The notes: generated by a model from the letters alone, not told the origin. DNA of 63,837 nt, filler included, from Olpidium bornovanus S191 (GCA_017911155.1; 33 parts of 33 records of this genome joined end to end with filler, not necessarily neighbours in it), one strand, 5' to 3'; shown: positions 42,466 to 44,553, counted from the first letter of the whole stretch. Numbers and translations: made by a program.

Positions 42466-43737
42466 CATGCTCGCCGATTTACTCTCTGCCTGAGCCTCGT
42501 CTTTTGCCCGGATTAACGCCTCTTCAACTTTTCGTTTCTCGTCTTCGTGCATTGAAAAGTGGTCAAAAATCATTTCCGCACCGCCACGCGACGAAATCAT
42601 CGAATTTATTGGTGGGTTATAGTAGATATTTTCTGTAAACCATTGTTTTGATTTTCCTTTAAAACCATCATCTTCCTGCAGAAGCACCGACGTTACATCG
42701 AGACGACATCTAAGGCCTTACCGTATACATTTGAACCGAAGGAAGTCGTCGGGTGTGTAGAGATAATATTAATCAAATCCTGCGCCTCGAACAGCCGCCG
42801 GTCATAGTGGCATATCGCGGAGGCTTCGCGCACCCTGAACACCTCGTTGACGATCGCCTCGTAATAGTGCAGCTGGTCTATGGTCGTGAAAGTCCGCAAG
42901 GTCCAGGACATCTCGCCTGGTGAAAATCCATCGAAACGGGTATTATCAATCAAACAGCCGGGCACAGAAAAATAAAAATGAACGAGAATACGAATCGCTC
43001 GTGTACGCACCCACCACTCTCAACCCCGCCCAGCCTTCTGCTTTGGCAGTGGTGGCACAGTTGTCGAGAAACTCAACCATCCTTTCCGGCTCGAACTTGC
43101 CATACTGTGTATATGCATCCTCGTAGTGAAGAAAGACAAGCTGCTTAGAGTCTATGAGGACTTGAAGGTTGAGCACAAAGTCATCGTCGCCAGTCCTGTC
43201 GCTGGAAGTGCGGCGAGCTTCTGCGGAATTCCCTGTCACAACGCCCGGCGTGCCGCGTGTACCAGGGCCGATAGGTGGATATTCCGGTAACGGAGATTTT
43301 CTCAGACGGTTTTCCTCGAACACCCGAGTGAAATGCCTGACAGCCGCACTCCCAGTTACCGCATCGACGATGTAGATGAGCTTCTCTCCGTTGAGCGCGC
43401 CTGTCTTCAGGAATAACTTGATATCTCGCCACCGGTCCTCGTCGGAATTGTAAACCCCACAAACGTGGTCTTTGACCTGCAGGGACTCGACTGTCTTCCG
43501 TGCGGCGTGCTGGCTAGCGACGGCGGAAATCAGCTTGCCTTCTTTTGATATACAACTCGAGAGGTATGACGACGTTGTGGCGCGACGAACGGTGCTTTCG
43601 GCGAGAACCAGCGGCCGTTCCGAGATCGGGTCACGCAAACCCCACGGGAAACACGTCCGAGGTACGGTGGCCGGGCCGGCTTGCGCATCTTGTGCGTCCT
43701 GTGACACAGCAGGACCGCGGTGTAGTAGAGGCATCAT
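42466..43737 (-). CDS. MEDS-domain sensor protein, probable histidine kinase, 3'-partial
   Basis: KDHVCGVYNSDEDRW..FLKTGALNGEKLIYIVD..LIDSKQL..AYTQYGKFEPERMVEFL..AKAEGWAGLRVVG|EMSWTL..YYEAIVN..SAICHYDRRLF..IISTHP..VY|ENIYYNPP matches the MEDS consensus; it is followed by EDEKRKVEEALIRAKDEAQAESKS. Introns 43010-42917 and 42721-42633. Start codon uncertain. Confidence 0.85.
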
Positions 43738-44107
43738 GTGCAGACGGCGGCCTGCACAGCCGTGACGGAAGCAGCGAGGTACGTTTTTATTTAAATACGC
43801 AGCGGGCCAGCCGCGTCTTCCTCGGTGCGTGCGGGAACCGCAGTTATGGTGCACAGCGCGGACGGTCCCGAGGGCGTATTTCCGTTCCCGAAGCTCGTTT
43901 TGAGGCAGCAGCGGCCGTCGAGCGGAACCTCCCAACAGCGCGAGAGCCTGACGTTTTTCCTTCCTGCGGCTAAGCTACCTGGCGCAAAAAAAAAAAAAAA
44001 AAAAGCGAGGCGAGAGAGAGGAGGCGGGAGAGATGAGACGGGAGAAAGGCGGACGGGCGAAGATAGGAGGGCGAGGACGGAGCAGGCCGAGCAGGCCGGA
44101 AGTGCAC

Positions 44108-44230
44108 GCCGGAGGTGCAGGCCGGAGGTGCGGGGCCGGAGGTGCGGGGCCGGAGGTGCGGGCCGGAGGTGCAGGCCGGAGGTGCAGGCCGGAGGGGCAG
44201 GCCGGAGCGCAGGCCGGAGGTGCACGCCGG
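44108..44230. repeat. 13-14-bp minisatellite (GCCGGAGGTGCRG)n, about 9-10 copies
   Basis: Direct inspection; lies upstream of the MEDS gene. Confidence 0.9.
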
Positions 44231-44553
44231 ATGTGGGCGACTGAGAGAGTTGCGTGCGCGCGCGCGTGCGCTGCGCTGCGGCAGGCGGGCGAGGAGGACG
44301 GAGTGGTGCGCTGAGTAAGGAAGGACATTTGTGCCAGCCATTAGTAAAGCGGAAAGGACAACCAACCACCAAAAACATGNNNNNNNNNNNNNNNNNNNNN
44401 NNNNNNNNNNNNNNNNNNNNNNNTTAATTAATTAANNNNNNNNNNNNNNNNNNNNNNNNNNNNNNNNNNNNNNNNNNNNGAATAAGATCCAGCAGAAAGT
44501 GCGAGAGAAGGGAAGCGAAAAAAAAAAATTTAAAACGCACAACGGGGAAAAAT

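Follow-up and report, generated by a model that had tools for sequence, protein, structure and literature searches.

The locus described here raised the question of whether a eukaryotic gene assigned to Olpidium bornovanus encodes a small-molecule sensor of prokaryotic type, and to which output such a sensor would be joined. The window, that is the whole 63,837-nucleotide stretch of DNA that was analysed, includes at 42466-44379 one entire 1914-nt contig of the Olpidium bornovanus metagenome-assembled genome. Translation and a Pfam scan identified a gene on the minus strand of this contig with a complete MEDS domain encoded across three exons, and the exon coordinates (43737-43011, 42916-42722 and 42632-42466) were consistent with GT-AG introns. 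Considered as a whole, the observations are best explained by the 5' part of an Olpidium MEDS hybrid histidine kinase gene with a prokaryote-derived sensor, which is the reading that we favour on balance. The features of the locus were as follows:

43011-43737, minus strand: exon 1, with the ATG at 43737; Pfam MEDS E 1.5e-15; RNA contig collinear from 43976 to 43010
42917-43010, minus strand: intron 1, 94 nt, GTGCGT...CACCAG, phase 1; RNA joint in run X2
42722-42916, minus strand: exon 2, MEDS second half (profile positions 106-161); Pfam E 6.9e-13; covered by RNA contigs
42633-42721, minus strand: intron 2, 89 nt, GTAAGG...TTTACAG; RNA joints in runs X2 and X5
42466-42632, minus strand: exon 3, cut by the contig end; end of MEDS (NIYYNPP), linker and signalling helix; gapless BLASTP to the metagenomic kinase P0072
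42466-42555, minus strand: signalling helix, residues about 334-363, MHEDEKRKVEEALIRAKDEAQAESKSASM; probable lead-in to a HisKA/DHp helix
43177-43323, minus strand: 49-residue insertion in MEDS, residues 139-187, VFEENRL...TGDDDF; from the alignment with 40 homologues
43738-44190, minus strand: 5' leader, from RNA-contig coverage; without AUG; contains a poly(T) tract and some of the 13-nt repeat array

Logan contigs from runs X2 and X5 contained the joints 42632/42722 (89 nt skipped) and 42915/43010 (94 nt skipped), the skipped stretches being bounded by GT..AG on the minus strand, and the RNA contigs lacking both introns came from two independent studies. Since the introns were removed in RNA, they are real and the gene is nuclear, eukaryotic and expressed. 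The preliminary description, made from the DNA alone, had proposed a nuclear eukaryotic gene with two canonical GT-AG introns of about 90 nt, one of them inside GLRVVG/EM, and the RNA joints bore this out. Intron 1 interrupts the motif GLRVVG/EMSW at a site where the alignment has no gap in the prokaryotic homologues. Exon 3 had been placed too far upstream, at a ctgcag; the real acceptor is tttacag, directly before an exon that begins slightly downstream at 42632. Exon 1 encodes 87 non-conserved N-terminal residues followed by the first half of MEDS (profile positions 1-105).

The start codon proposed previously, the ATG at 43737, was the first AUG of an RNA-covered leader extending to at least 44190, and no ATG was found when the minus strand of 43738-44327 was scanned. 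This ATG is therefore the best choice of start, there being no AUG in the RNA-covered leader upstream of it. The leader region includes about 11 copies of the 13-nt tandem unit GCAGGCCGGAGGT with 89% matches (window 44091-44235), a GA-rich 14-mer repeat (44007-44049) and an 18-nt homopolymer (poly(A) run 43978-43996). RNA contigs span 44021-44190, so that the leader repeats appear to be transcribed. An Rfam scan of the piece returned no RNA family.

Contig 1 of run X2 was 3161 nt long, with the piece corresponding to only its first 1328 nt. The transcript continues for at least 1833 nt beyond the contig end, about 611 codons including the 3' UTR, and the protein has a length of at least about 970 residues. 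Both RNA runs differed from the assembly by 43187 T>C (D184G), which lies within the disordered insertion described below and indicates that the RNA samples contained the same organism in a slightly different strain. A frameshifting alternative donor 4 nt upstream (window 43011-43014, 98 nt skipped) was present in a single low-depth contig of run X5 and reflects either a minor isoform or a misassembly.

A real MEDS domain in an intron-bearing eukaryotic gene was confirmed. The HMMER comparison with Pfam MEDS (PF14417) that had been suggested previously gave 57.8 bits for exon 1 and 49.2 bits for exon 2 when each was scanned separately, both above the cutoff of 29.8, with the exon boundary falling exactly between profile positions 105 and 106; residues 109-420 of the NCBI model scored 105.4 bits. 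The eight motifs from which a complete MEDS-like domain had been proposed were all found in the spliced protein, followed by a helix:

Residues 90-96: motif DHVCGVY
Residues 113-123: motif GALNGEKLIYI
Residues 209-220: motif YTQYGKFEPERM
Residues 235-247: motif GWAGLRVVGEMSW
Residues 261-266: motif YEAIVN
Residues 278-285: motif CHYDRRLF
Residues 296-298: motif THP
Residues 308-315: motif ENIYYNPP
Residues 339-360: helix EKRKVEEALIRAKDEAQAESKS

The invariant columns of the prokaryotic alignment were all kept (16 of 16), including His91 and Cys93 of DHxC, Cys278 of AICxYD and His297 of THP. Columns conserved at 90% or more matched in 33 of 44 cases when the NCBI model was used for the alignment; four of the eleven mismatches were due only to the lack of exon 3 in that model, and the real NIYYNPP raises the count, made by eye, to 37 of 44. 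Two additions were specific to the eukaryotic protein, namely the 87-residue N-terminal tail and the 49-residue insertion (139-187), the latter missing from all 40 aligned prokaryotic homologues and predicted to be disordered in the AlphaFold model (pLDDT <50 over model residues 65-100). The protein visible here contained neither a transmembrane or hydrophobic segment (maximum KD19 0.97) nor a Walker A motif, and the product is most probably a soluble cytoplasmic receptor.

A word-indexed protein search returned a single close protein, KAG5458693.1 (P0001; UniRef A0A8H8DHQ4, 420 aa), whose 90% cluster has one member and whose title reads 'MAG: hypothetical protein BJ554DRAFT_1035 [Olpidium bornovanus]'. 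This deposited model has three faults. Its first 108 residues derive from the repeat-rich leader via an intron without RNA support, nine spurious residues (AYTSDSYSR) derive from intron 1 at a position where all 40 aligned homologues are gapless, and exon 3 is absent. The truncated model bears the automatic UniProt tag 'MEDS domain-containing', and the deposited annotation hides any link of the Olpidium MEDS domain to a kinase.

The AlphaFold model (pTM 0.77) gave KaiC CI, FlaH and DnaB as its best PDB matches, with a TM of about 0.55 over about 230 residues, while its AFDB matches were MEDS proteins and MEDS histidine kinases with TM values of 0.64-0.68. An Atlas structure matched with a TM of 0.83 when normalised by the match, and weak Pfam KaiC matches were observed in several homologues. 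MEDS is thus predicted to be a RecA/KaiC-like alpha/beta domain without a P-loop, in which the invariant His and Cys would occupy the place of the P-loop and form a putative ligand or cofactor site. A predicted fold would be common to the Olpidium domain and the RecA-like ATPases KaiC CI, archaeal FlaH and DnaB, whereas Walker A is lacking in the Olpidium domain, identity is about 9% and ATP hydrolysis is not expected. A sequence search found no solved MEDS structure.

Searched exhaustively with HMMER, 1.84 billion cluster representatives yielded 412 proteins at E <= 1e-3, with only KAG5458693.1 itself below 1e-30 and the next best match at E 9.3e-11. These representatives included no relative closer than about 40% identity, no orthologue in another sampled eukaryote or prokaryote and no full-length version of the protein; the proteins predicted from RNA contigs are therefore absent from the searched collections. 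In pairwise comparison, the best prokaryotic MEDS domains were 28-39% identical to the Olpidium domain. The 83 contigs of relatives that were checked by genomic context or record title were all bacterial or archaeal, and the gene neighbourhoods of three close representatives had a prokaryotic arrangement. When one genome of each GTDB species was scanned with a pattern, 370 members of this MEDS subfamily were confirmed in bacteria and archaea, including Chloroflexota (Anaerolineae, Dehalococcoidia), Desulfobacterota, Actinomycetota, Nitrospirota, methanogens and others. As the checked relatives were all prokaryotic and no eukaryotic orthologue was found among the representatives, the sensor is best read as prokaryotic in origin, which these sequence comparisons support well. 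One of the relatives, P0142 (L082:807-2156), lies beside a ribosomal protein S17e gene (L082:2657-2926) on a densely packed contig, which is probably archaeal because of this neighbour.

A maximum-likelihood tree of 176 rows placed the Olpidium sequence without support, at the tip of a branch whose length, 2.18 changes per site, is seven times the median (0.3). Its weak neighbours, P0142, P0149 and P0072 (SH-aLRT 35 and 14), also have long branches, and grouping with them may be long-branch attraction. The long branch could reflect a relaxed or changed function of MEDS. Naming a donor lineage from the tree was dropped in view of the 2.18 end branch and the SH-aLRT values of 35 and 14. Horizontal acquisition, which had been thought probable previously, is consistent with the prokaryotic relatives as far as the origin of the sensor is concerned, while the tree gives the donor no supported position. 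A prokaryote-derived sensor would later have gained two spliceosomal introns and the 49-residue disordered insertion, the route of acquisition being inferred.

The gene probably belongs to Olpidium bornovanus itself. The DNA and RNA for the genome came from non-axenic zoospores washed off sand-grown cucumber roots, and a raw assembly of 187 Mb was reduced to a 29-Mb working assembly via tetranucleotide binning and similarity filters (PMC7865070); with such a source and binning, the assignment to Olpidium is the submitters' inference. The sequence recurred nearly unchanged (one difference in 1.3 kb) in RNA runs of several studies that shared one organism label, and no read matched among about 10 million in each of two other very large RNA runs so labelled. 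This pattern is that of a frequent passenger or parasite of the labelled organism rather than of the labelled organism itself and fits an obligate root parasite. A real, eukaryotic gene that belonged to another eukaryote of the zoospore wash, such as a protist or a root-associated fungus, and was mis-binned is the main competing account. It would be helped by the passage of contigs without a database match through the filters from 187 Mb to 29 Mb, by the small size of the contig (only 1.9 kb, without a phylogenetically informative fungal gene) and by the organism label of the RNA runs, which differs from that of the best match. Near-identical recurrence under one label together with zero reads in two runs is, however, the pattern expected of Olpidium on its host, and an orthologue was present in no annotated genome of a 15-billion-protein collection, which rules out the host plant and contaminants that have been sequenced and annotated. 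We therefore regard mis-binning as rather unlikely. A sequenced contaminant, e.g. an amoeba or oomycete, was rejected for annotated genomes given that the protein collections contained no orthologue, and another, unsequenced eukaryotic contaminant is a possible source of the contig. It is very improbable that the gene is a non-functional, decaying relic of a transferred gene or an artefact of assembly or annotation. The very long branch (2.18 vs a median of 0.3), the frameshifting donor in one run and the faulty deposited gene model point in that direction, but the frame is open through three exons with every invariant MEDS residue kept, the gene is transcribed and correctly spliced at a word depth of 81 in run X2, and the sole strain difference sits in the disordered insertion.

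With an expressed Olpidium gene as the preferred reading, the output of the sensor was considered from the helix that follows it. The preliminary description had taken this helix for the coiled coil preceding the H-box of HisKA. It is primarily the conserved post-MEDS signalling helix, which also serves as a PAS or GAF lead-in; its continuation nevertheless has a gapless match to the HisKA lead-in of P0072, a 651-aa metagenomic MEDS-HisKA-HATPase_c-REC protein. S-helices of about 40 residues are located between sensor and output domains, and MEDS is among their listed partners (Anantharaman et al. 2006, PMC1592074). The helix is conserved in the family as 'L..W(L/I).NL.ERKRAEEAL', and its core 'E(R/K)KxxEEAL' and position in the Olpidium protein match the homologues; the same helix precedes PAS or GAF elsewhere. 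Homologues run from the helix into PAS/GAF about as often as straight into HisKA, and in many of them it continues into the PAS cap 'SEE+YR.LFE', whereas the helix of P0072 instead reads ERKRIEEQLIKAKEEAEQALKAKSQFLAIVSHEIRTP.

The continuation of the Olpidium helix, IRAKDEAQAESKS, aligned without gaps to the HisKA lead-in of P0072. Exon 3 matched residues 196-247 of that protein in a gapless BLASTP alignment (E 5e-6 for the pair) from YY.PP through EKRKVEEALIRAKDEAQAESKSAS, which stops seven residues before the phospho-His of P0072. Spacing from the PP motif to this His is 53-58 residues in direct MEDS-HisKA fusions and 54 in P0072, and the Olpidium contig ends 48 residues after PP; an H-box would be expected 5-10 residues past the contig end. 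Direct MEDS-HisKA fusions were found in P0142, P0149 and P0072, with HisKA starting at residues 245-255. Domains among the best 79 relatives included HATPase_c in 33, HisKA in 25, HisKA_3 in four, HisKA_2 and HWE in one each and a receiver in 10. The further transcript, at least 1.83 kb, has the length expected for HisKA, HATPase_c and receiver domains plus a UTR. The visible part, which ends with the contig at residue 363, contains no H-box, ATPase or receiver residues, and exon 3 had no Pfam match. One possible register places a Ser at the conserved Phe of the HisKA lead-in (KSxF), normally a hydrophobic position. On this sequence evidence the gene product is probably a histidine kinase and, if a kinase in a eukaryote, it would likely be a hybrid with a receiver because of what is established for eukaryotic histidine kinases (reviewed in PMC6324907).

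An arrangement in which the helix is followed by PAS/GAF modules or a non-kinase output (HD-type phosphohydrolase, GGDEF, STAS or Ser/Thr kinase), so that the gene would encode no histidine kinase or a kinase only after further sensor modules, is unlikely. In its favour, the best 79 relatives include about 32 with PAS, eight with GAF, three with HD and two with GGDEF, the 'ERKRAEEAL' helix often continues into a PAS N-cap, Atlas clusters include MEDS fused to STAS, TetR, zf-HC2 and Fer4, and the further residues, at least 611, leave room for extra modules. The IRAKDEAQAESKS continuation nevertheless lacks the PAS cap '[YF]R..F/L.E' and has the gapless P0072 match, and most long relatives end in a kinase anyway. 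To our knowledge HD-GYP and GGDEF outputs have no partners in fungi, which also argues against such outputs here.

The prokaryotic MEDS-HisKA-HATPase_c(-REC) kinases available for comparison with the preferred architecture were P0072 (metagenomic), P0142 (the probably archaeal contig), P0149 (bacterial contig) and Methanosarcina acetivorans MA2082. Common to them and the Olpidium protein are the motifs DHxC, GEKxxYI, LRVxGEMxW, AICxYD, THP and YYxPP, the post-MEDS helix and, as predicted for the Olpidium protein, its spacing to the HisKA start, and all are soluble and cytoplasmic, in the Olpidium case by prediction (bioRxiv 10.1101/2024.10.04.616672). The Olpidium gene differs from these kinases, with which it has 28-39% identity, in its two introns, 87-residue tail, 49-residue insertion and eukaryotic host, and its kinase part is predicted. 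Early-diverging fungal hybrid histidine kinases with homologues of ethylene receptors or CHASE cytokinin receptors likewise have a sensor type common to prokaryotes and plant-associated fungi (PMC5285503, PMC6324907). Those sensors are membrane-embedded or extracellular, whereas the Olpidium MEDS sensor is predicted to be cytoplasmic.

The order of parts would be an unconserved N-terminal tail, the MEDS sensor, the signalling helix and then probably a HisKA-HATPase_c core and receiver. We infer that a small membrane-permeant or intracellular ligand would bind the degenerate nucleotide pocket of MEDS, that the resulting change would pass along the signalling helix to a dimeric DHp helix, and that altered autophosphorylation would feed a His-Asp phosphorelay. 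With a soluble cytoplasmic sensor, the ligand would need to be membrane-permeant or made internally. The MEDS family was predicted to sense simple hydrocarbon derivatives, a proposal attributed to Anantharaman and Aravind (2005). EtnR2 of Mycobacterium NBB4, a stand-alone MEDS protein, was required alongside EtnR1 for a reporter to respond to ethylene oxide (0.2 uM), and ethylene itself gave no response of that reporter (bioRxiv 10.1101/2024.02.19.581074; PMC11507031). DcmR of Methylobacterium DM4 regulates dichloromethane dehalogenase in a system that responds to dichloromethane. Both use MEDS as a sensor module, as would the Olpidium protein, and respond to small C1/C2 electrophiles, but EtnR2 acts through a CdaR-type activator and DcmR has an HTH domain, neither with a kinase output; they are likened to the Olpidium domain by the shared MEDS module rather than by sequence comparison, and their ligand evidence consists of reporter responses. 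By analogy with EtnR2, a C1/C2 electrophile related to ethylene or ethylene oxide is a candidate ligand class. A role in host ethylene chemistry or zoospore behaviour, including the sensing of volatiles by zoospores that the preliminary description had suggested, is speculation, and it is doubtful that the gene encodes a first eukaryotic MEDS receptor kinase, captured from a prokaryote, that senses a permeant host or rhizosphere compound and feeds a phosphorelay for zoospore behaviour or infection.

Eukaryotic histidine kinases are few, and the sensed signal is known for a minority of them. A full-text literature search found MEDS discussed only for bacteria and archaea, and a survey of eukaryotic histidine kinases that predates the Olpidium genome (PMC6324907) was not among the papers matching the term MEDS. 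Within the literature searched, no eukaryotic histidine kinase has been recorded with a MEDS sensor. Precedents exist for bacterial-type sensor domains in eukaryotic histidine kinases (PMC5285503), and the gene is most aptly seen as a sensor-kinase architecture familiar from prokaryotes, its kinase part predicted, that in a eukaryote carries introns and is expressed. Should the predicted kinase output be correct, it would represent a new cytoplasmic sensor class in eukaryotic two-component signalling, a clear example of how a prokaryotic sensor was domesticated with the gain of introns and an insertion, and a tractable soluble protein for learning what MEDS domains bind, a question that extends to bacteria. 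Olpidium is an obligate root parasite and plant-virus vector that is not culturable alone, and a candidate host-sensing receptor would for these reasons be useful for its biology.

The missing 3' part was searched for in JGI metagenome contigs by a protein-pattern scan and an exact 24-mer scan, neither of which found it. The contig had been noted previously to end at a CATG, and this NlaIII site was present at both ends (42466-42469 and 44376-44379), which is unlikely by chance. It suggests that the contig ends were set by a restriction-based library step or trimming and that the neighbour contig probably starts at the same site.
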